DNA of 64,000 nt. It comes from Pelomyxa schiedti (lineage: Eukaryota; Protista; Evosea). The translations under genes and the position numbers were made by a program. Location of the stretch: the NCBI GenBank assembly GCA_020536535.1, contig JAHLWZ010000761.1, positions 4,053 to 68,052 of the forward strand, given 5' to 3'. This document shows, in pieces, positions 5,830-63,754 of the stretch (within the stretch, counting starts at the first letter, position 1; the number at the start of each line of letters is the position of its first letter). The notes under the pieces were generated by a model, which saw only the letters and a list, made by a program, of their open reading frames with translations, searched no databases and was not told the origin of the DNA.

Positions 5830-7942
5830 TTAACGCACAACAATAACGTCAGTGGATATCAGGGCATAATCTTGGTGGGTCACGATAGCCAGAGACCTCA
5901 GTACCATATTGAGCACGTGTGTGGGCAACGGAATCTCGACATTGTCGAGGAGTGTCAACGCGGTACCCAGTGCCACTTTAAGCTCTATCTCAAGAAGGCC
6001 GGGGTCGAACTTCCCGATGCTGCTGTGTGAGGATTGTTAGGGAGACAACCGACCACAAGTTTGAGGATGGGAGAAGCGATTGAAGGATATAAATCAGGTG
6101 CAGAGTAAACTGGAAGTCCGTATGAGACAGACGTATACTGTTGTTGGCTTGAATAAGGTTGAACGATGCAGTCAATAAAGTATCAACGGTAAAGGCCTTT
6201 GCGTATGTCAACTCTTATGTTCTACTTTTTTTTTGTTTACCAATTTTGTACTGTGATCTGCAGAAGTAATGGTTGGGTGAAGTTCCATTAGGAAGAAAGG
6301 TACCAGGGTTGATTACAAGCCAACTCAACTTGAGATGTGCTTCAATGCCAATGACATTATTTTCTGTAAGGTAAACAACAGGAGAACTAGATGGAACTAT
6401 GGCAATTTCCAATGGCATCCCCGGGTATACCCGATACAGCTGCAATACAATGAACTATGAGAGTGAGTGAAACTTCTTTGGTATGTGCACTTCTACTTTA
6501 TACATGTCAGTTAAGAAGAATTTTTCCGCATTTTCTGGAACATCGTAGTACCCGACACCTAGGTTTCGTCATAATTTTCTCCCGTCTTTTTCTGCGTACT
6601 GTAGTTCAACTTTCCACTTTGAGTCAAAGCATCCAGTGCAGAATTAATTACGTATTCGTCTACAAAGAGCTAAAAGTATTAGAGCAGTCTTACCTAAGTT
6701 TTGGATGTTCTTACTTGAACCATGGAATTTGTTTGGCTTTCTGGGAGAACTTTTACAGGGAAGTTCGTTTGCATTTCATGCTGCGGATCGAAAATAGTCC
6801 CATTGATTGCTCCGGTTATGTACCAAGCAGTGGTTCCTGTTTGTGGCATTAACACTGTAACACTGACACATTCCAGTACAAACCAATTGAAAGCACAGAG
6901 GCATCTAAGTAGAAATCATCGAAAAGGTGGATCGTTGTTGGAAGATGGGAAAGGGTTGTATTAAGAGAGATAAGTGCTCCCTCTATTGCTGGTGGAACCA
7001 TTTTGTTTATTGTATTCTCTAGGATCCACGAAAAGACATCAACAAACAACTGGACCATATAAGAGAGACAACAAACATTATGTCAATACCACTGGGAGAG
7101 GAAAGGAAGGGTGTATTGGGTGATGTAAAAAAGGAAAGACCTGAATGAACCACGAAGGACCTCCATGAACTCTGTAAAAGTGTTCGAGTTAAACAGCAGC
7201 CAAACTCTAACCTGATATAAATGTCACCAACATCAAAAGCTATGCGACTCGGAGCAATAGTCAATTGCCCGTTGCCATTCGTGCCCAAAAGAGCAGAAAT
7301 AGTGAGTTCAGACTTGGATATGGATTAATTGTACTATCACCGCATTCAAACATACATTCTCAAGCTCAATAGTAGCGGTGCCCTTCTCACTTAAATGAGG
7401 CCAGGAGCTTCGCCTTTTTGAATCACTCAGTACTTCTCTATTAAAAAACGGAAAACCTAAAACTCCAAGATAAGGAGCCGCTTACTTCAGCACCGTACAA
7501 CGTAAATGTCACTGCTATAAAAAAGAATGTTACTGGCCAGCTAGAGGATTTTCTAGTGTACCACTTCCAGCTGTAAAGGCTATGTTAGTATCACCAAAAG
7601 AAACTGCACTAATGGTGATATCCGTAGCATTTACCTCAACAGTACCGAACAATACACTTATCTACCGTAGTTTAGTGGCTATCGTTCATGACGATAAAGA
7701 GGTACTTTTTCATGAATATCTTCTATTTGCATGTCAAGTATAGCATCCACCAACCGCGGGACCAGTGCATCTTACGGAATGAGATTTGTAGGTCTTTGAG
7801 CACACAAAAAAGTACCATTAAGCAAGTAATCCAGTCCCACCTCAGTGACAGTGAATTGGGCTCCTGCTGGGATACTAGTGCTCACAGAACAGGCTTGTAA
7901 ACAAACCAAGCAGAACAGCAATAACTTAGTGGCAACCACCAT
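5830..7942 (-). CDS. LBP/BPI/CETP (TULIP) lipid-binding protein, secreted
   Basis: Signal peptide MVVATKLLLFCLVCLQACS, then PAGAQFTVTEVGLDYLLN. Internal ILENTINKMVPPAIEGALISLNTTLSHLPTTIHL. C-terminal IPLPTHVLNMVLRSLAIVTHQDYALISTDV. This is the BPI1/BPI2 pattern. Confidence 0.75.
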
Positions 7943-35019: not shown

Positions 35020-37054
35020 TTAGAATAATAACTGAGCTGCTTTGACGGGAGTGCTGCTTCCGTCGGCTTCTAGTGAAAACCACGTGATGTTTGCTGTGGG
35101 TGTGAATGTGGCTCTGGAATTTGCTGTGATTGTCTGTACAATAGCTTTGGCGAGTGTTTGTGGTGTTTTGGGAATTTGGCTGTTCTCGATGTATATCTCC
35201 GCAAAGGAGCTGACTGAATCGCTAATAGCCCCATCGTTAATGTACACCCTCTTTTCATGACCGTAGTGTGCCAGTGACATTAATTCTGGTGAGTGTGTAT
35301 GGCCCAGAACGAGGATTCTTGTATCACTTCCCTGGTATTTTGGTAAGTTATGAGGCTTTCTTTCAATTAATTTACATGAAGAATATCGCGTGCATATTGC
35401 TCAATTGAAAAGCTTGCACCCCCAGCACCCAGGCAGAGTCTTAGTTTATCTGAGGACCATACAAAGTAATACAGGAGACATTTTACTATGCTTGACTGTG
35501 AGTGTTCTGCTTGCATCCACTGAAACTCTTCTGCTACTTCTTTCTTGAGGAAGAATTAAACAACTGATGATTCCAAAGGGTCATACAAACGATTTGTTTG
35601 TTCCGTCAGGCATTTTGAAGAATCGAGAATCCAATTGGTTTATAGTTATTGGAGATTCCCCGATGTGTGTACATATTGTGTTGTATATGCTCAAAAGTAA
35701 ATTGGGAATCTGTGTTTATGTCACATTGCAATATATTTGGTATCTTACATCAAATTGGAGAAAGTTATCGGCAATTTTCCACATCTCCGATGTTGACGCC
35801 CCTTTGTACCAATCCCACGATGAACAGAGTCTATAAAGCTTTATTAATTACTTCAATCTCCTATGAGAGCGTGATGCCTTGTCACATAATATCCAATAGG
35901 AAATTGGTGGTGGCTTCGTTTGCTCTTAGGTAAACTGTTGTAGTGGTCGATTAAGTGGCCATGCCCGATCCGAATTTGGAAAAAAGGAGAAACAGAGGAT
36001 GGAACGTTGTACCAGTACTCGTCTTCGCTCTGTCAAAGTCAGACAAGAAAAAAAAACATAAAATCAAAGAAGTAGCAAGAAAGAATGCTAAAAACAATAG
36101 TGTGGTTATGACGCTCACATTACTGTAAATGAAAGATGGTAGATACCGATATTAGGGTTACATTGAGCTGAAATAGGACATTTATGCGCTCTTGTGTGAC
36201 AGAATTATCATCGTGATTACTGTTAAGTACATCAGGAAGTAGCATCCACTGTTGTTCCATACCCAATAACATACACAAGGTGCACTCCCTAAGTAAAGAA
36301 TCAACTGGTCGTTGCATAAAGAAAAGGTGTAAAACTGATCAACCTCATTCGCCAGGCGAGTTAGTCCCTGCTTGATAGTCCTTCCAATGAAAGAATCCAT
36401 TACCTCTTCCACGCTTTTGGGGGTGACATAATGGGGCTGTGCCCACACATCAATAAAATCACCATTGATGACAAGAATGCGGTATTTAGCTTTGGATAGG
36501 TGCACAATGTCAAACAGGGATTCCAGTTTGGACAATTGCTTTCCACCAAAAGAGTGCATAATTGTAGGGGAAGAAGTGGTCATTGGTACTGAGTCCAAAG
36601 CTGTAGTACTGGGAAGGCTTTTTGGGGCCACGAAAGAGGCACCCACATGTAAATCCGAGCAACTAAAGATTGCAACATTAGCTGGTGGAGCAGCAGGCTC
36701 TGGTGAGTCATCCGCCTCACCGATTCTTGGGGTACACAATTCCGGCAGGTAACCGCACAGCCACCACCGCCACAATGGCAGAGTAACCACCAAAACCACC
36801 ACCACAAAAGAGACCACAAAGGAGATGCCGAAAAACAGGGCATAGATGTAGGTCACCCCAAGGTTCCACACGCGCGCCAGCACCCTCATTGTCGCGGAAA
36901 AGCATGTACTGCTCGTAGCGGAGGCGGAACTGCGGAAAAACAACGTTCTTCTTGGCCCCGCCGACTTTGGTCTCCTCGCCGTCAATGGTGACGGCTGGCC
37001 TTCCTCATCATCCCTTGCTGTTGCCCGCGACGCACCCCGCAACATTTTTTTCAT
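35020..37054 (-). CDS. Calcineurin-like metallophosphoesterase (LpxH-like) with N-terminal TM segment
   Basis: SDLHVG, INGDFIDVW and a GNHD motif reconstituted across an intron (YVIG|NHDDN). Hydrophobic segment YIYALFFGISFVVSFVVVVLVV. Confidence 0.8.
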
Positions 37055-37519
37055 TAAATGGCAAATAGTGCCAACAATTACCCGTGTTGATGAGTCGGCA
37101 GGGGAGTGATGCCAAACCTCCCCAGTCGACGTGGCCCACGTTCAATACGAAAAAAAAAAAAAAACACTTTGCATTTACACCCTTTGGTTTTGAGATGCTT
37201 TCCAGGAATGCAACACAACCCCACACCAATCAGGCCTGTTTGATGCTATTGAAGGGACACGCAGTCGTGTCGTAAAATAAATTGGAAAGATCTTTGATAC
37301 ACGCGGAGGAAATGTTGAATGTTGATGCTGTAACTGCACCTTTCTTGCCCGAGTTGGGACCCCAAGTGTGATGAATTCCAGTCAACTGTTAGTAAAGACA
37401 AAAAAAAAAGGTCACGCGACCAGCTATTTATTTAAATGCCATTAAAAAAAAAAAAAAAACAAAGCCGTCAACCAGCCTCCCCTGTTTATTCTCTTTTTTT
37501 TTTTTTTTTTGTGTCTTTC

Positions 37520-37825
37520 ATGCCTTGGTGGAGCCCGTTCATTGATGGCACTGTCCAAGTAAAACTCAATGGTGACACGAAAGAGCTGCATTTGATACCG
37601 TACGTGTTACATAAGGTGCCCGCTGCATTGACGACTTCAATGGTTTTTGTATGGAACAAGGACATCTGTAACTCTCACATTGATGCTGGGTGGCAGTTGT
37701 GGAACACCGGAGATCTTGGCGAGATGTGTCTCTTTGAGAGCACACAGCACCAAATTTGCCGTTTCGACGAACTCTGCTACTTTCCTAGTTCTCAATTAAA
37801 TCTCGCTACAAAGGAGGGATTTTAA
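37520..37825 (+). CDS. Unassigned 101-aa ORF (hypothetical)
   Basis: The only frame I found open across this non-low-complexity stretch between two divergent gene starts. No recognised motif. Confidence 0.25.
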   Translation: MPWWSPFIDGTVQVKLNGDTKELHLIPYVLHKVPAALTTSMVFVWNKDICNSHIDAGWQLWNTGDLGEMCLFESTQHQICRFDELCYFPSSQLNLATKEGF

Positions 37826-37938
37826 TTACAATAACGGAAAGGTAACAAACCGTCATGTGCGAAATGCCAAAAAAGCTTCTTTTTCCCCCCAAAAGTTAGT
37901 TTTATCCATTTAAAACAAATAAAACCAACAACAACGAG

Positions 37939-40900
37939 ATGCCGTCCTCGTCCTCTTCGAAGGTTGGTTCGCAATTACGTTTTTCCCTTTCCCGAGATTA
38001 GTTCCCTTGTTAACGATGGTTCTTCTTCTTCTTTTTTTTTTTTTTTCTTCCCTGGCTTCCTTCGATATGCTAGAAGAAAAAGGTGTTTCTTCCCTTCCAT
38101 ACGATTTCTAAAAAATAAACTAAACTAAACCAATCCAAACATTTACGAATTTGTAGGGGACACCAGAGGTTAAGAAACACGACAAGTCCAGCAGTAGCGG
38201 CTCCAAGAAAAAGTCCAGCAGTAGCAGTTCCAAGAAACATTCCGGCAAGATACATGTAGGACTTGGGATTGGTGGTAAGGCGGGCTTGGGTATTCACAAA
38301 CCCCACATTGAGGTGAAAATTGGCGGCAAAACCAAATCCAAATCCAAGTCTAGCAGTTCCAAAAAAACCAAATCCGCAGTCCACCTACATGCTGGTGGTT
38401 CCCTCGAGCATCCACACGTTGAAGTTGGAGTGGAGGTTAAGCCCCACGTCGAAGTTGACGTGAAGCCGCACGTTGAAGTTGGAGTGGAGGTTAAGCCCCA
38501 CGTTGAAGTTGAAGCCGCTGTACCACACAGCGAAGTTAGTGTGGAGCTTCCTCATGTGGAAGTTACCCCCCATGTAGACGTGCATCTTCCCCGTCCAGAA
38601 GTTCACGCTGAAAAGCCACATGGTGAGGTTACCCCACATGTAGAGGTGCATCTTCCCCATCCAGAAGTTCAAATTGCGGCCAATGCGGATTTACACCCAC
38701 ATGTGGAGGGTCAAGCAGAGAAGCCCCACATTGCAGTCGAAGTCAAGCCACACGTCGAAGTCCACACTGAGCTGCCGCACATTGAGGCTGAAGTTAAACC
38801 TCACCTTGACATTCACGCTGAAAAGCCACATATCGAAGTCCACATTGACAAGCAACACGAGATTCCCTCAGGAGAGCTACATGTTGAAGTCCACTCAGAT
38901 AAACCACTGATTCACGGTGCGCCTCATATTGGGATTCATCCTGGAGTCCATGCTGAGAAACCGCATGTTGAAGTAAAACCACACATTGAGGTTCATGCTA
39001 CTCCCCACGGCGAAGTAGAGGTGAAGCCAAAAGTGGAGGTTGAGGTTAAACCGTATGTAGATGTTCAGCCTACTATCCCTCATGCTGAAGTACATGTGAA
39101 TGCGCCACACGTTGAAATGCATATCGAAAAGCCACACCTTGAGATTCACCCCTCAGTTCATGTAGACCCCCAACCTCACCTCGATGCCCATATTGAAAAA
39201 CCACATGTTGATCTCCACCCTACATCACATATCGAAGCTCACACCGAAACGCCGCACGTTGAAGTCCACCCTCATGTTGAAGTACATGTTGAGCCTGCAG
39301 CGAAGGTAGAAATTGTAGGCAAGAAAAAGTCAAGTAGCTCCGAGAAACATAAACTGGGCTTGAAGCTTGGTTTCAAGATTGGAGCCAAGAAATCCTCTAG
39401 TTCAGGCAAAAGAAAAGCTTCTCTTCACGCCGATGTAAGCGTGAAGAAGCCAGAAATAGACACAAAGATTGCTGCCAATCTTGAGGTCACAGGAAAGAAA
39501 AAGAGTAGCAGCTCCTCGAAGAAACGGAGTCTGAAAATAGGCGTTCCTAAAATCGGCCTTGGACTAGGAATAGGAAAGAAATCCAGCAGTTCTGAAAAAA
39601 AGAAGGCTGCAATGAAGGGAAAAGTGGAGGTTGCGGCAACGAAGCCTGCTCTTGAAGGCCATGCTTCTATCAAGGTTAAGGCTGGAAGCAAATCCAGCAG
39701 TTCAAAAAAGAAAAAACTCATCAACTTACCTTCTGTGACTCTCGGCAAGAAGTCGAGCAGTTCCGAAAAGAGAAAAGCACTTAAAGTAGCAGTGGAAGGA
39801 AAACTACCTGATATCAGCGCAACAGGTTCTGTTACAGTGGAGAAGAAACCGGAACTAGTAGTAGGAGCTACGGTTGAAGTTTCTACTGGAAAGGTAGAAA
39901 TAGAGGCAAAAAAACCAGAAGGAGAAGTTCACGTCAAAGCGGAAATTTCAACTAAGAAGAAATCTAGCAGTTCAAGCAAGCACAAGCTTGAGCTTCCCAA
40001 GGTTACACTTCCCAGTGTTGAGCTACCCAAAGTGGAACTTCCCAGCGTTGAGCTCCCTAAAGTTCATCTTGGCTTTGGGAAAAAGAAATCCAGCAGTTCA
40101 GAGAAAAGGAAAGTTTCCCTCAAAGCCGAGGCCAGCATAAAACCAGAAACCACAAAGGCACCTGGTGAGGAAATACCAGCTGTACCTCACACAAAAGTGG
40201 AGGTTACAGTAAAGAAGTCCAGCAGCTCTTCAAAGAAACGGACCTTGAAGATAACTCCTCCAACTTTGGGCCTCGGCCTCAATTTAGGGGGAAAGAAATC
40301 CAGCAGTTCCGGAAAAAGGAAAGCAACTATCAGTGTAGAAGTCCACAAGAAAGAGCCGGAAGTTGTTGCGCCAACAGGACACTTGGACTTGTCAATAAAA
40401 CACCCTGAACCAGAACCCAAGGTGGAAGTGAAAAAGGGAGGAATGTTTGCCAACCTTACAGCCAAATTACCAAAAAAGAGTAGCAGCAGCTCGCATAAAT
40501 CAGGCAAAGCAAAGGCATTTGTACCTCTAAATACTCCAGTTATCAGTGTGGATCACAAGAAATCCTCTTCTTCATCCAGCAAAAAAGTCAAAGCTGCAGT
40601 TAAAATAGACATACCAACTCCAAAAGTTGCGGTACAAGTTGAGCCCAAGGTTGAGGTGAAGGTTGATGGGAAGGCAGAAGCCAAGGCAGACGTGAAGGTG
40701 GAGATCGAGAAGCCAAAGGTGGGGATCGACCTCAAGGCTGGTGGCAAGAAATCGAAATCTTCCTCCTCGAGCTCACGGAAGAGGAGAGCAGCTGGAATCA
40801 AGGTCGAAATCGGCCATCCGAAGTTGGGAGTTGACATCAAGGCCAGCGGAAAGAAATCGGGATCGTCCTCCTCGCCCTCACCAAAGAGGAAAGCGGGAAT

Positions 40901-43900
40901 CAAGTTCGGCATCGAGAAACCGAAGTTTGGAGTTGAAATCAAAACTGGGGCAAAGAAATCAGACAGCTCTTCATCCAGGAAGAGGAAAGCAGCCGCAGCC
41001 GTGAAGGTCGACGCTGGGATCAAGGTTGGTGGTGGAATCGCAGTCACAGGTGACAAACCAAAGATGGACGTTGGCATTGGTGTTAAGGTCGATGGAACCA
41101 AAAAGAAGAGCACATCCTCGAGCTCGCGGAAGAGGAAAGCGGGAATCAAGGTCGAGATCGAGAAACCGAAGTTGGGCATTAACATCAAGGCCGGAGCAAA
41201 GAAACCAAGTAGCTCTTCATCCAGGAAGAGGAAAGCAGCCGCAGCGGCGAAGGTCGACGCTGGGATCAAGGTTGATGGTGGAATCGCAGTCACAGGCGAC
41301 AAACCAAAGATTGACGTTGGCGTGAAGGTTGACTCGCCCAAAAAGAAGAGCACGTCGTCGAGCTCTCGCAAGAGAAAGTTGGGAATCAAGATCGACATTC
41401 CCAAGCCAAAGATCGGTGTCGAAATTTCAAAGAAACCCTCATCATCCTCGAGCTCCCGGAAGAGGAAAGCAGCACTCAAGGTTGACATCGAGACGCCAAA
41501 GGTGGATGCTGGTGTCAAGGTTGATGCTGGAATCAAGGTCAGCGGTGACAAACCAAAAGTTGAACCGATGAAGAAGAGTGGAGGGTTCTTTGGCTTCTTC
41601 GGCGGTCCCAAGGCTACTGTGGATGTCCAAGTTGATGGAAAGAAAGCCACTTCGTCGAGCTCGCGAAAGAGGAAAGCAGCACTCAAGGTTGATGCCGGTG
41701 CAAAGGTTGATGCTGGAATCAAGATCAGTGGTGACAAGCCAACGATTGGAGCCACTGTGAAGGTCGATGCAGGAAAAAAGAAGTCAACATCATCCAGCTC
41801 ACGGAAGAGAAAAGCAGGAATGAAGGTTGACATCGAAACACCGAAGTTGGGTGGCGACGTGAAGATTGATGTTGGGAAGAAGAAATCGTCTTCGAGCTCA
41901 AGAAAGAGGAAAGCAGGACTTGCGATCGGTCTCGACAAACCAAAGCTCAACATTGACCTGCATGCTGGCATCAAGAAATCAACATCGTCCTCGAGCTCAC
42001 GGAAGAGGAAAGCCGGAATCAAGGTTGGAATTGAAAAACCCGAAGTTGGCATCAAGGTGGCAGTTGACGGAAAGAAGAGCGAAAGCAGCTCATCCAAGAA
42101 GAGGAAACTTCACTTGGAGGCCAGCGGGAAGAAGCCTGACGTTCACGTGAACGTGGACGCCAAGCCGTCTGTCGAGGTCAGGGTCGAACCACCCAAAGCA
42201 GACGTCAAGGTTGAACCACCAAAGGTGGATGCCAAGGCGGGCGTCAAAGTTGATGCCAAGGTTGAAGTCAAGAAACCAGGATTCTTTGACAGCATCTTCT
42301 CCAAGAAAGAGCCTCCCAAGGTTGAGGTGAAGGTTGATGTGCATGCTGGCAAAAAGGTTTCCACATCGTCGAGCTCTCGGAAGAGGAAAGCTGCAATCAA
42401 GGTCGAAAAGCCAAAGGTGGAAGTTGCAATTGATGNNNNNNNNNNNNNNNNNNNNNNNNNNNNNNNNNNNNNNNNNNNNNNNNNNNNNNNNNNNNNNNNN
42501 NNNNNNNNNNNNNNNNNNNNNNNNNNNNNNNNNNNCCAAGAAGAGGAAACTTCACTTGGAGGCCAGCGGGAAGAAGCCTGACATTCACGTGAACGTGGAC
42601 GCCAAGGGACCAAAGAAGTCTGGATCTTCGTCGAGTTCAAGCAAGAAACACGCCAAGCCGTCTGTCGAGGTCAGGGTTGAACCACCCAAAGCAGATGTCA
42701 AGGTTGAACCACCAAAGGTGGATGCCAAGGCTGGTGTCAAAGTTGATGCCAAGGTTGAAGTCAAGAAACCAGGATTCTTTGACAGCATTTTCTCCAAGAA
42801 AGAGCCGCCCAAGGTTGAGGTGAAGGTTGATGTGCATGCTGGCAAAAAGGTTTCCACATCGTCGAGCTCTCGGAAGAGGAAAGCTGCAATCAAGGTCGAA
42901 AAGCCAAAGGTGGAAGTTGCAATTGATGGAAAGAAGAAAACTTCGTCGAGCTCACGGAAGAGGAAAGCGGGAATCAACATCGGCATCGAGAAACCAAAGA
43001 TCAACCTCGACCTTCAAGCCGGTGCGAAGAAATCTTCATCCTCGAGCTCTCGGAAGAGGAAGGTGGGAATCAAAGTTGATGCAGGAGTCGCTGTTTCTGG
43101 TGACAAACCAAATCTCGACGTTTCTGTGAAGGTCGACGGAGCGAAAAAGAAATCAACGTCGTCGAGCTCTCGGAAGAGGAAGTTGGGAATCAAGATCGAC
43201 ATCCCCAAGCCAAAGATCGGTGTCGAAATTTCAAAGAAACCCTCATCATCCTCGAGCTCTCGGAAGAGGAAAGCAGCACTCAAGGTTGACCTCGAGAAGC
43301 CAAAGGTTGATGCTGGTTTCAAGGTTGATGCTGGTTTCAAGGTGGATGCTGGTGTCAAGGTTGATGCTGGAATCAAGGTCAGCGGTGACAAACCAAAGGT
43401 CGAACCACCGAAGAAGAGTGGAGGGTTCTTTGGCTTCTTCGGCGGCCCCAAGCCAGANNNNNNNNNNNNNNNNNNNNNNNNNNNNNNNNNNNNNNNNNNN
43501 NNNNNNNNNNNNNNNNNNNNNNNNNNNNNNNNNNNNNNNNNNNNNNNNNNNNNNNNNGAGCGAAAAAGAAATCAACGTCGTCGAGCTCTCGGAAGAGGAA
43601 GTTGGGAATCAAGATCGACATCCCCAAGCCAAAGATCGGTGTCGAAATTTCAAAGAAACCCTCATCATCCTCGAGCTCCCGGAAGAGGAAAGCAGCACTC
43701 AAGGTTGACATCGAGAAACCAAAGGTTGATGCTGGTTTCAAGGTTGATGCTGGAATCAAGGTCAGTGGTGACAAACCAAAAGTTGAACCGATGAAGAAGA
43801 GTGGAGGGTTCTTTGGCTTCTTCGGCGGCCCCAAGCCAGAAGCACCCAAAGTCACTGTTGGTGCCAAAGTTGAAGGGAAGCAATCCACTTCGTCAAGCTC

Positions 43901-46426
43901 TCGGAAGAGGAAAGCAGCACACAAGGTTGATGCTGGAATCAAGGTCGGTGGTGACAAGCCAGCGATTGGGGTCAGTGTGACGGTCGATGGTGGTGTGAAG
44001 GTTGATGGCAAGAAGAAGACATCAACATCGTCCTCGAGCTCACGGAAGAGGAAAGCCGGAATCAAGGTTGACGTCAGCAAACCCGAAGTTGGCATCAAGG
44101 TGGCAGTTGACGGAAAGAAGAGCGAAAGCAGCTCATCCAAGAAGAGGAAACTTCACTTGGAGGCCAGCGGGAAGAAGCCTGACATTCACGTGAACGTGGA
44201 CGCCAAGGGACCAAAGAAGTCTGGATCTTCGTCGAGTTCAAGCAAGAAACACGCCAANNNNNNNNNNNNNNNNNNNNNNNNNNNNNNNNNNNNNNNNNNN
44301 NNNNNNNNNNNNNNNNNNNNNNNNNNNNNNNNNNNNNNNNNNNNNNNNNNNNNNNNNCCAAGAAGAGGAAACTTCACTTGGAGGCCAGCGGGAAGAAGCC
44401 TGACATTCACGTGAACGTGGACGCCAAGGGACCAAAGAAGTCTGGATCTTCGTCGAGTTCAAGCAAGAAACACGCCAAACCGTCTGTCGAGATCAGGGTC
44501 GAACCACCCAAAGCAGATGTCAAGGTTGAACCACCAAAGGTGGATGCCAAGGCGGGTGTCAAAGTTGATGCCAAGGTTGAGGTCAAGAAACCAGGATTCT
44601 TTGACAGCATTTTCTCCAAGAAAGAGCCTCCCAAGGTTGAGGTGAAGGCAGACGTGAAGGTTGACGGGAAGGCAGAAGCCAAGGCAGACGTGAAGGTGGA
44701 GATCGAGAAGCCAAAGGTGGGGATCGACCTCAAGGCTGGTGGCAAGAAATCGGGATCGTCCTCCTCGAGCTCTCGGAAGAGGAAAGCGGGAATCAAGGTC
44801 GAGATCGAGAAACCGAAGTTTGGAGTTGACATCAAGGCCGAAGCAAAGAAATCAGGCAGCAGCAGCTCTTCATCCAAGAAGAGGAAAGCAGCCGCAGCCG
44901 CCAAGGTCGACGCTGGGATCAAGGTTGATGGTGGAATCGCAGTCACAGGTGACAAACCGAAGATTGACGTTGGCGTGAAGGTTGACTCGCCCAAAAAGAA
45001 GAGCACATCCTCGAGCTCTCGCAAGAGGAAAGCTGGTCTCTCCGCGAAAGTCGAAGTTGAAAAGCCCAAGGTTGATGCCGGTGTCAAGGTTGACGCAAAG
45101 AAACCAGAGGCTCCAAAGAGGGGAGGTTTCTTTGGCTTCTTTGGTGGCTCGGCAGAACCACCAAAGGTTGAAGTCAAGGCTGACGTTCATGCTGGCAAGA
45201 AGTCTTCCAGCTCCTCGAAGAAGGGCAAGGCTGCTGTGTCGGTCAAAGTGGATGCCGGCGTCAAGGCAAGTGCTGACAAGCCAAAGACCGACAGTGCCGA
45301 CAAGCCCTCAAGACCACCCAAGAAACCCCGTGGCTTTTTCGCGTCCCTTCTGTTCTCGAGCTCTTCAAGTTCTTCCTCTTCCTCCAGTTACAGTTCTTCC
45401 GGTTCCTCAAGTTCTGAAAGCAGCAGAAAGCCTGTTACTACTGAAGTAAAAGGGAAGGCTTCTGTTAAGGTGGCTACCGAAGTTGATGCAAACAAGAAAG
45501 TGAGTGTACCCAAGGCAAGCAAGTCGTCATCCTCAGGGAAGAGAAAGTTGGGAATAAAGGTTGACCTTGAGAAGCCAAAGGTTGATGCTGGAGTTAAGGT
45601 GGATATCAAGACCGGTGCCAAGAAGGATTCTTCCTCCTCTCGGCGCAAGCACAAATTATCAATGAAAGCTGAAGGTAAAGTGGAAGCACCTGCAGTTGAA
45701 GTTAAAGTAAACACTGATACTTCTGTGGGTGTAAAGAAGTCATCGTCTTCTGGTAAGCGCAAAGCTATAACTGCCGCGAAGGTTGCTGTTGACGTATCAG
45801 CAAAGCCTAAAAAGTCCTCCTCCTCCCATAAACGAAAAGGACTAGGACTAGGCCTTGCTGCTGTTTTACCCGTGATTAAGAAGTCCTCGTCCTCCTCCAA
45901 AAAACGCAAAGCACTTGAGATTACTCCCACGGTAGGCGCAAAAGTAGATGTCTCAGTTGAAGCAAAGGCAGATGTTAAACTTGCAATAAAGGAAGATGTG
46001 AAAGTCACCAGCAAGCACTCCTCCTCCTCTTCTAGACACCGCAAACTCGACATAACAGTGAAGGCAGGAAAGAGTTCTTCATCATCAAAGAAAAAATTAC
46101 ATGGTCTACGCCTAGGTTTGGGTATTAAGATTGCCGAACACAACGAAGCAGTACACAAAGCTGCAGTTGCCACTGAAGATCATCACGAAGCTCACGTTGC
46201 AGTTCACGCAGAAGCACCCAAGGTTGAAGTAGAGGTTGCCAAACCTCATGTGGAAGCTCACATCACCGCTGGTGTTGATGCCAATGCATCAGTTGGTGTT
46301 GGTGCCAAGCTGGAAACTCCGGAAATTAATGTTCATGCCAAGAAGGACAAGAAATCGAGCTCGTCCTCTAGCAAGAAGCACAAGAAATCCAAGTCAAGCT
46401 CAAGTTCCAGTAAGAAACACCACTAA
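37939..46426 (+). CDS. Giant repeat protein (about 2,800 aa including gaps): His-rich PHVEV repeats, then about 50 poly-Ser/basic modules separated by K-V-D/E-rich segments
   Basis: First exon MPSSSSSK (37939-37962). The main exon starts at 38157, is open across four contigs joined by 100-N gaps, and ends SSSSSSKKHH* at 46426. No stop codons in the sense frame of any contig. Confidence 0.8.
38400..39300 (+). repeat. Imperfect tandem coding repeats encoding (K/T)PH(V/I)EV units
   Basis: For example, cacgttgaagttggagtggaggttaagccccacg occurs twice within about 38415-38505. PHVEV-like units recur throughout. Confidence 0.85.
42436..42535. other. Assembly gap (100 N)
   Basis: Run of exactly 100 N, so a placeholder length. 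Confidence 0.99.
43458..43557. other. Assembly gap (100 N)
   Basis: Run of exactly 100 N. Confidence 0.99.
44258..44357. other. Assembly gap (100 N)
   Basis: Run of exactly 100 N. The roughly 120 bp before the gap is repeated immediately after it. Confidence 0.99.
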
Positions 46427-46533
46427 ATAACAAGCACACCCTTGTCTTCATAGGTTTGTTTTTTTAGTCCACCAGGTTTATGCTGGTTGGATGGGAATAA
46501 ATAAAACTTTTTTTTTTTAAAGTTTTCTTGTCT

Positions 46534-51248: not shown

Positions 51249-51521
51249 CACCGATCCGTCTTTTTTTTTCTTCTGACGAAACTTTCTACGGTGTGTTTTT
51301 TTTAGCTTCAATCTTCCCTCAACCCTCAGGACCAGGACGTAGATGCCTTTCCCAGCAGTGGGCTACTTCGGCTCTTGTGCGGAAGAACCATCACTAAGAC
51401 TCAGATTCCAGCAAATGGCTGAATAAAATAATCAACGGACCGGAACGCTGAAATTTTCCTTCTCGTCGCACAGGATCGGCCTGGTGTTTTATTTATTCAG
51501 CCAAATACCTGATCAAATCAA

Positions 51522-52970
51522 ATGGCTAGCGCTCCGTTGGTTACTGTCGTACACGAAGTGGTTGTGCTGGACCAAACGCCCAGCGACGGCCGTTGTAGCC
51601 TCGTGGCCACCCACAACCTCGACATCCCCATTCGCGATGCCCTCCGTGCCCATGCTACTTCCACGCTCTCCCCAACAAGTGCCACAACCACAACCACAAC
51701 CACTACGTCCGCTGCGTCTCCTCCGCCGCCCGCCAGTGCGGCCAGGGACATCAACAAGTCCGCCACGGCGCCGGTCAACTGCCCGGGCCTCGCGCTGCTC
51801 GTGCTCCTGGACCCCGTGGGCGACGCCTCGCTCAGCCTCAACGAGAACAGCGACCCCGCGGTGCGCGAGGACCTCGCCACGGCCGCGTGCCGCCGCTGCC
51901 CCCACGAGCCCGCCCGCGCGGTCACCTTCGGCTCGTCCTCCCTGCTGCTCCCCCTCGACACGGGCGGCCACCTCAGCCTCGGCACGTGGCAGGGCCTCTA
52001 CCTCTGCGACTGGTCGCCGTCGTACAGCCCCGCGCGCCGCCGCCGCTTCACCCTCGGCGTCACCGTGGTCACCTCCCCCGCGTGCTCGCTGACCAAGGCC
52101 CTCTTCAAGCCGCCGTCGCGCGGCCACCACTCGCTCGTGCCCGCCGCCTCGCGCGTCCTGCGCAGCGCCGCCGACAAGGCCGAGCCGCCCGGCTCGGTCG
52201 CCGCGCCCGACGGCCTGGCCTGCGTCATGGTGCGGCACTGCAGCGCCTCGGTGTCCCACGTCGAGGACCGCGAGGTCGCCGCGCAGCTCGAGCCGGCGCT
52301 CGGCGTCGTGGTCCCCGACGCGTGGAGCGGCAAGCACTTTGAGCACACGTACGAGGGCTGGGACGACATGCCCGGCCACGCCAAGAACGCGCTCATGGGG
52401 GGCCCCTGCGCCCTGCTGCCGTGCTCCCCCGGCCGCCGCCTGATGCTCGACGACCGCGAGGACGTGGTGCTGGGCGAGCACCGCGACGACTGGGGCAGCG
52501 GCGGCCGCAACATCTCCGTGACCCACCTGCCTGGCTGCTTCAGGGCCGCCCAGCCGCTCAGCATCCCGGGCGGGGGCTCGCCCGTGGCCAAGGTCCCCGC
52601 GGCCGCCCTGAGCCCGGGCGGGTCGACCCTTACCTCTGGGTTCGTGATAGCCAGGGGCCCCAGCATGTGCTTCTTCGTGGTGGTGCCGCCCTCTGTCGAC
52701 GCCGCGGAGCTTCACGCGCAGCTGCTCTCGCAGAGGTGCACCAGCGACGAGTACCTTGCTGCAAAGTGGCGCAGCAGCGGCCGCCCTCAGCCGCACCTGG
52801 GCCCCATCCTGCGCTCTCTCGTGTTTGGCCGCGGCCGCAGTATCACGCTGGCGGTGCGGGACTCGGCATTGTGGGTTCCAGCTCAGTCCTCAGTCTGTAT
52901 ATTCAGCGCTGTGGAAAACACACCCCTCCCTGACCAAGTCCCAATCTCCCTCATGTGGTTCGGCATTTGA
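51522..52970 (+). CDS. Intronless protein with three tandem YjbQ/UPF0047-like repeats
   Basis: Repeat 1: SLSLNENSDPAVREDL...GHLSLGTWQGLYLCDW. Repeat 2: VRHCSASV...FEHTYEGWDDMPGHAKNALMG. Repeat 3 is degenerate: HLGPILRSLVFGRGRSITLAVRDSALWV. Confidence 0.8.
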   Translation: MASAPLVTVVHEVVVLDQTPSDGRCSLVATHNLDIPIRDALRAHATSTLSPTSATTTTTTTTSAASPPPPASAARDINKSATAPVNCPGLALLVLLDPVGDASLSLNENSDPAVREDLATAACRRCPHEPARAVTFGSSSLLLPLDTGGHLSLGTWQGLYLCDWSPSYSPARRRRFTLGVTVVTSPACSLTKALFKPPSRGHHSLVPAASRVLRSAADKAEPPGSVAAPDGLACVMVRHCSASVSHVEDREVAAQLEPALGVVVPDAWSGKHFEHTYEGWDDMPGHAKNALMGGPCALLPCSPGRRLMLDDREDVVLGEHRDDWGSGGRNISVTHLPGCFRAAQPLSIPGGGSPVAKVPAAALSPGGSTLTSGFVIARGPSMCFFVVVPPSVDAAELHAQLLSQRCTSDEYLAAKWRSSGRPQPHLGPILRSLVFGRGRSITLAVRDSALWVPAQSSVCIFSAVENTPLPDQVPISLMWFGI

Positions 52971-61734: not shown

Positions 61735-63754
61735 ATGGCTACGCGAACGACGGCGAGTGCTGCTACAACAACACCCACAAGTGCGAGTAGCACAAGTGGC
61801 AACAGCGGTGGGTTCTCGATTGGGCTCCGGCTCAGTGATCTCAATGACTTCATTGCCCCATCTCAGGCGTGCGTCAAACCAGTCAATGTCCCCAAAGATC
61901 CCTCTCAAAAGGTTATTTTTTTGCTGTTTCGTCGGAGGGAAATGGACATGCTCACACTCGTTCGCAATTTACTGAAACAAACACCACAGCGTGCAAAAAT
62001 TGAGCTGGCTGATGATGGGACCTACGTGGAAGTTGCTGATGATGGGACACAAAAGGCGTTGATGACTGCTAAAATCACGTTAAATGACTGCCTTGCTTGC
62101 AGGTGAATGAAATTCCGTTTCTTTATCTTTTTGTTTGACACTGCAATATGTACTGACACTAAAAAAAGTGGTTGCATCACTTCAGCAGAAAGCGTTCTGG
62201 TTACTGCACAGTCAATAGATGAGTTCTTAAAACAGTTACAAAGTGGTAGGCTTTTTTCTTTGTACTTTCACGTCCCATACTAACTTTCCAGGAAAAACCA
62301 CTGTTGTTTCCATTTCTCCACAGTCTCGTGCCTCTATTGCTGCATACTTTCACCTCACCGCAATTCAGGTTAGCAGTAAAATCTCTGACGCCAATAACAA
62401 TTTCCACAGACATTCAAAAAACTCACGCACTTCTTTAAAACCCTTGGCGTGTCCTATGTCTTTGACACAAGTTTTGGGTAGTTCTTTCCTGCATTCCATA
62501 CAATTTAACGCCGCACAACAGCCGAGAGTTTTCGTTACTTGAAACTGCCTCTGATTTCATTGCCCGTCATAGTAGTGCTGATCCAGCACACCCTCTTCCC
62601 ATGTTAGCTTCCTCCTGCCCTGGTACCCACTGAAGCCCGGTTATTTCCTTGCATTAACTTTTTTAAGGTTGGATTTGCTACGCTGAGAAAACACACCCCG
62701 AATGCCTACCCAATATTAGCACTGCCAAGTCTCCTCAAGCAGTAATGGGAACCCTCATTAAATATCACTTCGCACCTTCATTGCACGTGATGTACGCAAT
62801 GATCTACATAAATAATTAAATCTTATCCATGCCAAGGCCTGCTGATATATATCACGTCACAATAATGCCATGTTATGACAAGAAACTGGAAGCATCTCGA
62901 GATGATTTCTATAATCCAACTACAAAGGCTCACGACGTTGATACTGTGTTGTCAACAATAGAAGTAATTGACTTGCTCACAACTAAGGCTGTCGATTTTG
63001 CCAACCTTCCCGAAGCCACCCTTGATACCCTGTACCTCTAAGATGACGAAGTAAATTGACTTACTGTGTCCACAGCTATAGCAATGCTGAAAACGACATT
63101 TTATTTGGGCAAAAGTCTGGCTCAGGGGGCTACCTTGAGTACTTAGTTTACCGTGCCGCCACAGATATATTCCATGTCGACCCCCCTAAAACCCTTGAAT
63201 TCCGGCCTGTATGCAATACGGACTTCAGAGAAACCATTTTAAAGGTTATCACCTTCGGCCCTCATTAAACTTAATTACTCTCCAGGACAGGGAAGGGAAT
63301 GTACTCATGCGATTTGCCAAAGCATATGGTTTCCGGAATATCACGAATGTAACCAGGAGGCTTAAAGCAAGAACCCTAGAATATGCATTTGTGGAGATAA
63401 TGGCCTGCCCCTTTGGTAGTTTCTTTCCTTTGTGATTTTCTTTCTAAGTCTTTCAGGTTGCCTTTGCGGTGGAGGCCAAATCCGACCAGCTCCACCACAA
63501 ACACCAGAAAGTTTGCGTTCCGAAGTAGAAGTAATTTATGATAACCAACAGGTCCGTACAGTTACCCAATTGCATTTTTCCCTAACATTTTTTTTTCTCA
63601 CTTCATACAGGAAGTACGCTTACCAGATGACAATACCACAGTCCGAGGAATCTACGAAAGTTGGGTACAAACCAGAAGCAAAGCATTACTACATACACAA
63701 TATCATACCAGGGCAAACACCACCCGAACCAACCCTATGAATATCCAATGGTGA
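61735..63754 (+). CDS. CIAO3: Nar1/IOP1 hydrogenase-like cytosolic Fe-S assembly factor
   Basis: [72 protein letters not shown], and C-terminal LHTQYH...NIQW*. Confidence 0.95.

Follow-up and report, generated by a model that had tools for sequence, protein, structure and literature searches.

Giant orphan proteins of low complexity are common in protist genomes, and several described systems offer points of comparison for the one that is the subject here. AHNAK, AHNAK2, and periaxin are very large, basic, and repeat-built, and have no enzymatic domain; AHNAK and periaxin are made of alternating hydrophobic and charged stretches, punctuated by Pro or Gly and predicted as β-strand or coil, and the membrane and nuclear location of AHNAK is under phosphorylation control. 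In MARCKS-type effector domains, a basic Ser cluster with Phe nearby binds acidic lipids and is released by phosphorylation, with MARCKS itself having one effector domain plus an N-myristoyl anchor. Ki-67, Nopp140/treacle, and the SPKK histone tails are large, basic, disordered, and repeat-built, and their charge is tuned by multi-site Ser phosphorylation. The central units of AHNAK and AHNAK2 measure 128 and ~165 amino acids (aa), respectively (PMC8833689), while the epiplastins (articulins, alveolins, and plateins) share a domain of low complexity in which V, I, K, E, and P abound (PMC6212826). Here, we describe a gene on the + strand of scaffold JAHLWZ010000761.1 (assembly GCA_020536535.1) of Pelomyxa schiedti, an anaerobic, multinucleate archamoeba, which lies within a 64-kb stretch of that scaffold (the window, whose coordinates are used throughout). 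Its product is an unusual orphan, though the general kind to which it belongs, giant charged-repeat scaffold proteins, is known; its design principle is reasonable, and its biology we infer from the sequence.

The P. schiedti genome was obtained from seven micromanipulated cells as a 52.4-Mb assembly with 7.43 introns per gene; contigs were built with the single-cell mode of SPAdes, the largest k-mer being 121, and scaffolded by P_RNA_scaffolder, that is, by RNA-seq read pairs, and genes were predicted by Augustus, PASA, and EVM (PMC8887013). Both the choice of k and the mode of scaffolding bear directly on how the locus has to be read.

Gene organization

The open frame on the + strand is very long, from an ATG at 37939 to a TAA at 46424-46426, and the public gene model, which likewise ends at 46426, has a product of 2,116 aa. 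The features of the locus, including four contigs (A to D) and the gaps that separate them, are as follows.

37939-37962, + strand: exon 1, ATG plus seven codons (MPSSSSSK), phase 0; a model with this exon yields the annotated 2,116 aa exactly
37963-38156, + strand: putative intron of 194 nt, GT at 37963-37964 and AG at 38155-38156, with a long T-rich tract; the frame is back at 38157
38157-38297, + strand: N-terminal part, which has the earliest S-run/K modules (KKKSSSSSSKKH type)
38298-39305, + strand: acidic head rich in His, built from 28 irregular units of 6-12 aa that have the form P-H-(V/I)-(E/D)-V
39306-40634, + strand: diverged early modules, 11 of the 14 preceding 40635, with G/L/V/K-rich alternating segments between them
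40635-42435, + strand: units x1-x4 in the first copy, the older one, of the higher-order repeat, with which contig A ends; from self-blastn, with a period of 246 nt in Tandem Repeats Finder (TRF)
42436-42535: gap 1, 100 N, at a repeat junction; contig A closes with 121 nt that are also found at 42808-42928 inside contig B
42536-43457, + strand: contig B, 306 codons open
43458-43557: gap 2, 100 N, at a repeat junction; contig C opens with 121 nt that are also found at 43139-43259 inside contig B
43558-44257, + strand: contig C, 232 codons open, which with contig B closes an in-frame cycle
44258-44357: gap 3, 100 N, flanked on its two sides by the same 121 nt (100% identical)
44358-45036, + strand: start of contig D, last copy of repeat units x3, x4, and x1
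45037-46423, + strand: non-duplicated C-terminal third, further modules and terminal S/K modules
46424-46426, + strand: stop codon TAA, annotated gene end, with an AATAAA-like signal ~85 nt downstream

A first-pass annotation of this DNA had described an essentially single exon of more than 8 kb. The very long + strand frame stands, but it is divided by an eight-codon first exon, the putative 194-nt intron, and three gaps into open pieces at 37939-37962 (8 aa), 38157-42434 (1,426 aa), 42538-43455 (306 aa), 43560-44255 (232 aa), and 44360-46423 (688 aa), which sum to 2,660 aa. The ends of the protein were read correctly, as it starts with MPSSSSSK and finishes with SSSSSSKKHH. Paired Phe (FF) motifs are found in the first repeat copy (41583-41600 and 42279-42299) and in the C-terminal third (45125-45142 and 45332-45355), where they are followed by a Ser tract of 23 residues (45356-45424) and, ahead of the terminal S/K modules, by a second His-rich piece (46133-46273).

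Architecture of the product

The product is of low complexity throughout, with a mass of ~250-280 kDa and an isoelectric point (pI) of 10.1; over the 2,660 aa of the open pieces, K makes up 19.5%, S 14.3%, V 11.6%, A 8.3%, and G 8.0%, and there is no Cys or Trp. Its sequence reads as that of a block polyampholyte, in which an acidic His-rich head is joined to a module-bearing body. The first ~390 aa differ in kind from the rest and comprise three S/K modules and then the acidic His-rich array. This head (~336 aa, His ~15%), which the first-pass annotation had not described, has 57 D+E, 23 K+R, and 53 His in its 318-aa core and a single S/K module of its own near the 5' end (KSKSSSSKK, in the second P-H unit). 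Its charge is about -34 with neutral His and can become positive on His protonation.

The body alternates between two elements, the first of them being modules of the form K2-3, optional S/T/G/P/E, S4-6, and (R/K)4, with a mean length of 11.6 aa, a mean charge of +5.3, and a mean of 5.4 Ser/Thr. By this pattern, 48 modules are present in the assembled pieces, 44 in the minimal assembly path described below, and 50 when one extra repeat cycle is added; about 50 poly-Ser/RKRK modules had been claimed, a count that depends on the assembly path, while the clustering of Ser runs with basic residues is well beyond chance (SSS[RK]4 occurs 27 times, compared with 0.03 in shuffles). There are 57 Ser runs of at least three residues, holding 253 Ser in the minimal path and 279 in the assembled pieces, and RKRK is the commonest tetrad downstream (21 of 57). 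The spacing of the modules is irregular (median 37 aa, range 4-327). The diverged modules at 39306-40634 and 45037-46423 retain the K-S-R/K grammar, and their DNA is no longer alignable.

Between the modules lie near-neutral spacers (+0.02 charge per residue, median 27 aa) with V, I, L, F, or M at every second position. The alternation of V/I with K, E, D, or G is interrupted by Pro or Gly every 8-10 residues. As had been noted earlier, alternating hydrophobic and charged segments are a real property of the chain: hydrophobic-x-hydrophobic triplets (V/I/L/F/M) number 289 against 98.8 ± 8.6 in shuffled sequences, the lag-2 autocorrelation is 0.365, and the middle residue is K in 69, E in 62, G in 50, and D in 34 triplets, or 215 of the 289. 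Val and Ile together account for 16.6% of residues and E+K+D+R for ~33%. Eight basic-flanked Phe motifs of the GGFFGFFGG and PGFFDSIF types are distributed across the body. The net charge amounts to +258 in the minimal path and +301 in all pieces, and it resides almost wholly in the 48 modules of about +5, in keeping with the polyelectrolyte design suggested at first sight. With ~5 Ser/Thr in each module of about +5, full phosphorylation would, on chemical grounds, reverse the sign of the body charge. Neither a signal peptide nor a transmembrane segment was detected, again in line with the first description (highest 19-aa Kyte-Doolittle mean, 1.25).

Repeat cycle, gaps, and true length

In window coordinates, the open frame shifts at every gap (2 to 0 to 2 to 1), so that no single frame runs through the sequence as it is written. 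Self-comparison reveals duplicated sequence on both sides of every gap, and each of the six contig ends has a stretch of exactly 121 nt, never more, with an identical copy elsewhere. One shared 121-nt sequence serves as the start of contig B, the end of contig C, and the start of contig D, while the last 121 nt of contig B match positions 7573-7693 of a locus on another scaffold (L003), inside the Pelo_10993 gene. Because 121 is the largest k used by the authors of the assembly, these ends are de Bruijn-graph repeat vertices, and the identity on both sides of gap 3 means that contigs C and D overlap in the assembly graph. The 100-N spacers are placeholders set by the scaffolder at repeat junctions, and their length does not measure a distance.

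Homologous positions across each gap share their codon phase, and all graph-consistent joins are in frame. Rather than collapsing to a much shorter protein on reassembly, the frame retains 2,386 aa without a stop along the minimal graph path, which runs from contig A through B (42929-43259) and C (43679-44257) to D (44479 on). Contigs B and C together close an in-frame cycle of 1,182 nt, exactly 394 codons; each additional cycle adds 394 aa, and one extra turn gives 2,780 aa, still with no stop. At its center, the gene holds a higher-order tandem repeat, young and in frame, that is beyond the reach of a k = 121 assembly, which could not separate the 1,182-nt repeat and therefore left three N gaps. 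Being graph junctions at k = 121, these gaps are closable with long reads. The public model can be reproduced with exon 1, the first intron, and a single GT..AG choice at 42423..44365, so the annotators most likely treated all that lies between contigs A and D as one intron; the model of 2,116 aa omits ~1.9 kb of open, repeat-encoded sequence.

That the frame encodes a giant product of ~2,100-2,400 aa or more is robust; its continuity across the gaps is putative, as no Logan contig from the four available sequencing runs bridges any of them. The ~2,800 aa given by the first-pass annotation is one length among several, next to the sum of the pieces, the minimal path, the public model, and the path with one extra cycle, because the repeats leave copy number and order ambiguous; what stood is the giant frame itself. 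Contigs from the runs also hold in-frame repeat junctions that are absent from the scaffold, namely 42996 joined to 40821 in all four runs and 42819 joined to 44654 in one RNA run, together with several loose ends of 114-255 nt, which implies that the true array holds repeat variants that were not assembled. Further repeat variants or paralogous cassettes exist beyond the assembled ones. The joint of 42819 with 44654 was flagged as GT..AG but rejected as an intron, as it links homologous repeat positions in frame, with 30 nt on one side. Differences of ~2% across the gaps are more readily ascribed to distinct repeat copies, allelic variation being less likely because the variant positions of the run contigs cluster in the repeat region (~40 in 41859-45125 vs 2 in 45200-46500).

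Such a structure raises the question of whether the locus is an assembly artefact, a chimera of several shorter genes or alleles. A chimera would fit with three observations: the region is rich in repeats and its three joins were made through RNA pairs, contig B shares its final 121 nt with another locus, and the run contigs show the additional junctions and loose ends just described. Against this, contigs A and D are uninterrupted frames of 1,426 and 688 codons, the contig ends adjoin one another in the k = 121 graph with every join in frame, and 2,116 aa are obtained even when contigs B and C are left aside. An artefact of this kind is therefore regarded as highly doubtful.

Evidence for a transcribed gene under selection

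Beyond the long frames of contigs A and D, several lines of evidence show that the target is a genuine, lineage-restricted protein-coding gene, and probably a transcribed one. All six Ser codons are in use, and 50 of the 57 Ser runs combine TCN and AGY codons, so that the runs are not slippage tracts. Diverged repeat copies have ratios of non-synonymous to synonymous substitution rates (dN/dS) of 0.21-0.52, and the two near-identical pairs compared in full (the end of contig A with B, and the start of contig B with that of D) differ by 11 synonymous changes and 1 non-synonymous change. Selection thus acts on this + strand frame and on the protein sequence.

In terms of expression, two single-cell RNA libraries contain 66% and 45% of the sampled words of 37800-42435, and contigs from the RNA libraries cover 44871-46500 at an identity of at least 99%. 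One RNA-run contig opens with the Smart-seq2 template-switch oligo directly before 45443, as expected for RNA from the + strand. In addition, it was RNA-seq pairs that linked the four contigs (P_RNA_scaffolder; PMC8887013). Antisense open reading frames (ORFs), for example 40553-42097, were ruled out by the dN/dS below 1 in the + frame and by the + strand template-switch junction. As a separate observation, two probable DNA runs (X1 and X2) have zero depth over 45326-46500, where both RNA runs are full; as records can be hidden by a filter, this may mean nothing.

Relatives and the shared cassette

A search of Pfam with all four pieces from 38157 on, at E-values up to 1, returned sub-threshold noise only, and there was no match in a PDB sequence search or, for the whole window, in Rfam. 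When the central 1,028 aa (39351-42434) were compared exhaustively by phmmer with 1.84 billion cluster representatives, there was one real match (P0001, E = 1e-34), the other twelve matches being bacterial low-complexity sequences of the LPKVE type. The same protein was the only one found by a word-based search with the first 1,426 aa, and the last 463 aa had no match in such a search; a literature search on target peptides gave nothing useful. The match is the hypothetical protein Pelo_10993 of P. schiedti itself, a GTPase-like protein on scaffold JAHLWZ010000807.1 (L003:6001-9236). From these searches, with HMMER covering the core and word searches the rest, the target appears to have no relatives outside the P. 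schiedti genome, and the earlier statement that no established family fits the whole protein is borne out, apart from this same-genome insert.

Pelo_10993 is the middle one of three tandem paralogues and the sole one with a module insert of ~200 aa. The insert (~L003 7300-7860) lies within one long exon and consists of three S-run/RKRK modules plus GGFFGFFGG; it is 94% identical over 286 nt to 43722-44007, and 121 nt are identical to 43337-43457. The module pattern is essentially absent elsewhere in the window and in the 15-kb Pelo_10993 locus. The similarity suggests a recent cassette transfer or gene conversion between the target and the unrelated Pelo_10993 gene, with an assembly path through a shared k-mer as the alternative. 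If transferred, the cassette has spread into a second, unrelated gene.

These findings bear on the possibility that the protein is expressed low-complexity "filler" grown by unequal crossing-over, its apparent design being a by-product of the amplification of one founder unit. Orphan status, a young higher-order tandem repeat with copies 84-100% identical, and the presence of the same cassette in an unrelated GTPase-like gene are what such a process would leave. Nevertheless, this origin is considered improbable, given that the repeat copies have dN/dS of 0.2-0.5, that near-identical copies differ almost solely by synonymous changes, and that early and late modules keep their grammar despite unalignable DNA, with mixed Ser codons.

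Comparison with known families

The size, basicity, repeat structure, lack of an enzymatic domain, and Pro/Gly-punctuated alternation noted at the outset for AHNAK and its relatives are shared by the target, but this is a resemblance and not proof of membership. The target lacks the AHNAK PDZ domain (Pfam, pieces from 38157, to which exon 1 adds 8 residues) and has no unit of 128 or 165 aa, its TRF periods being 18-246 nt and its higher-order unit 1,182 nt or 394 aa, and HMMER, run with the core, detects no sequence similarity to AHNAK among the 1.84 billion representatives. Conversely, AHNAK has neither regular poly-Ser/polybasic modules nor a His-rich head, both of which are present in the target. 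In a protein-language-model search, the body was nearest to AHNAK fragments (0.73) and the head to giant-virus repeat proteins (0.74), Plasmodium HRP2 (0.57), and an IMCp cluster (0.54); all of these scores lie below the reliability line of 0.9, and the one for AHNAK serves as a lead only. Of the AHNAK/periaxin analogy drawn in the first-pass annotation, the alternation and this weak echo survive, whereas domain content, unit length, and homology do not agree. With Amoebozoa on one side and vertebrates on the other, the likeness to AHNAK is convergent at best.

Epiplastins have in common with the target the low-complexity composition described above, yet the acid/base dyads that are the hallmark of their medial domain are depleted in the target (43 vs 114 ± 9 shuffled), the VPV motif of articulins has a count of 0, there is no match in Pfam to IMCp, the domain of alveolins, and head and tail domains of normal composition are missing. 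Amoebozoa, moreover, lie outside the range in which an epiplast is known. The analogy with protist cortical charged-repeat proteins, drawn in the first-pass annotation, thus does not extend to membership of the epiplastins. The principle of the MARCKS effector domain is shared as well; however, the target has 44-50 modules where MARCKS has one domain, starts with MPSSSS instead of Met-Gly, has no Phe in its modules, with the FF motifs lying apart, and shows no detectable homology. Ki-67, Nopp140/treacle, and the SPKK proteins resemble the target in size, basicity, disorder, and repeat structure. In contrast to these proteins, the target has no FHA or SRP40_C domain (Pfam), and the Val-rich alternation of the target is absent from them; all 48 modules are basic on both flanks, nine with a single D or E, whereas the CK2 sites of Nopp140 are acidic. 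Titin PEVK is alike at the level of composition, since the head and spacers are P/E/V/K-rich, but the 28-residue PPAK units are lacking. A Ser tract beside a basic cluster recalls the S-segment followed by RRKK in dehydrins, a partial analogy that had been proposed before and that stays at the level of composition, for there is neither a K-segment nor a Pfam Dehydrin match.

As far as sequence comparison goes, the target thus belongs to none of the AHNAK, epiplastin, dehydrin, Nopp140, and MARCKS families, while by analogy it seems to share working principles with AHNAK/periaxin and with MARCKS-type basic domains. The word "system", used for it in the first-pass annotation, is too wide, as a single gene is involved.

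Proposed function and alternatives

From the charge pattern and these analogies, the protein may be a giant multivalent electrostatic scaffold that acts in the manner of AHNAK/periaxin and MARCKS, a proposal that is put forward tentatively, as the likeliest of those considered here. The 44-50 polybasic modules would tether it cooperatively to polyanionic surfaces, with an acidic membrane or the cortical cytoskeleton as the first candidate and nucleic acid as the second. The Val-rich alternating spacers could form extended or β-prone links, possibly self-associating, and multi-site phosphorylation of the Ser runs by a basophilic kinase would neutralize or reverse the charge of the modules and lead to release. 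The His-rich head, going from about -34 to positive on protonation, might add a pH-sensitive input. A cortical, membrane, or cytoskeletal site is ranked slightly above a nuclear one because strict alternation and 16.6% Val+Ile typify structural repeat proteins.

Several points weigh against this scaffold proposal. The body score of the language-model search falls short of the reliability line, and Amoebozoa have been described with an actin-based cortex and not a β-strand membrane skeleton, the search for IMCp there being empty (PMC6212826). In favor of the proposal, the target falls on the disordered side of a charge-hydropathy plot and is probably, to judge from prediction, disordered or only conditionally ordered. 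AlphaFold2 gave a mean predicted local distance difference test (pLDDT) of 44 for 41262-42434 (input of six rows, aligned from internal copies), where no secondary structure was confident, and of 37 for the head (single sequence); the models are essentially helix-free, values of 37-44 make secondary structure unreliable, and the inputs were shallow, so that the low confidence is weak evidence for disorder. The RNA support is at the level of contigs. Finally, the ~27 runs of four basic residues could also be nuclear or nucleolar targeting signals.

The last point leads to a different location, in which the protein would be a nuclear, nucleolar, or chromosome-periphery polycation that binds DNA or RNA, like Ki-67 or the SPKK tails of H1 and sperm histones. 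Its basic clusters would then be import or nucleolar retention signals, and Ser phosphorylation would release it, for example, at nuclear division, an event that occurs many times in this multinucleate amoeba. Four consecutive K/R residues constitute the PSORT "pat4" nuclear signal, and Ser beside basic minor-groove-binding motifs is a known phospho-switch; the 27 occurrences of SSS[RK]4, the pI of 10.1, a net charge of about +260 to +300, predicted disorder, and the lack of a membrane-targeting signal are all compatible with such a role. On the other hand, there is no enrichment of the strict K-(K/R)-x-(K/R) pattern of classical import signals (15 matches vs 25 ± 5 shuffled), on account of which the nuclear site is ranked lower, 16.6% Val+Ile in strict alternation is atypical of nuclear basic disordered proteins, and Pfam finds no FHA, HMG, H15, or other nuclear domain. 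On balance, we consider a nuclear polycation somewhat unlikely, but still a serious alternative.

A microtubule- or actin-associated repeat protein, comparable to the KKEE/KKEI repeats of MAP1B or to trypanosome MARPs, with phospho-regulated binding to tubulin tails or F-actin, would also be large, repetitive, Lys-rich, and of low complexity, with Ser beside basic clusters, a comparison that draws on general knowledge of microtubule-associated proteins (MAPs). Since neither Pfam nor phmmer detects similarity to any MAP family and nothing in the target is specific to tubulin or actin, this assignment is quite unlikely. An extension of the electrostatic scaffold, for which we see a small chance, is a doubly gated polyelectrolyte, in which a head flipped by pH (at least 53 His) and a body flipped by phosphorylation would assemble reversibly into a coat, gel, or condensate; the anionic surfaces that come into question are those of the plasma membrane, nuclei, and symbiont-containing vacuoles.

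Should the proposed scaffold mechanism be true, the protein would represent a giant charge-switch scaffold that evolved independently in Amoebozoa, apart from animal AHNAK and protist epiplastins, and it would be a natural model for the gating of binding or condensation by repeated polybasic/Ser modules together with a His-rich block. In its present state, it is a curiosity and not a discovery.

Neighboring genes and elements

Immediately upstream, a 129-codon ORF on the + strand (37436-37825) ends 113 nt before the ATG of the target and has no match in Pfam; this ORF probably represents the final exon of the gene before the target, the alternative being an upstream exon of the target. A further upstream ORF (36185-37054) is not on public record in a look-up of the annotated gene start. 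Downstream on the same scaffold, a single-exon ORF encodes a triple-YjbQ protein (51522-52967). Directly upstream of its start codon lies an intergenic element of ~94 nt (51414-51507, + strand), of which a copy 85% identical is present on the other scaffold (L003:11737-11831). The element folds as a long hairpin closed by GGCTGAATAAA/TTTATTCAGCC (minimum free energy -27.7 kcal/mol, z = -3.3) and has no Rfam match; it could be a repeat like a miniature inverted-repeat transposable element (MITE) or a small structured RNA. Farther along (L002:20214-21449, window ~61735-62970), there is a gene with [FeFe]-hydrogenase large and small subunit domains, whose neighbors, at compact gene spacing, are an ER-type HSP70 gene, a SIR2 gene, and a protein kinase gene. 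The [FeFe]-hydrogenase gene fits the anaerobic lifestyle of P. schiedti.

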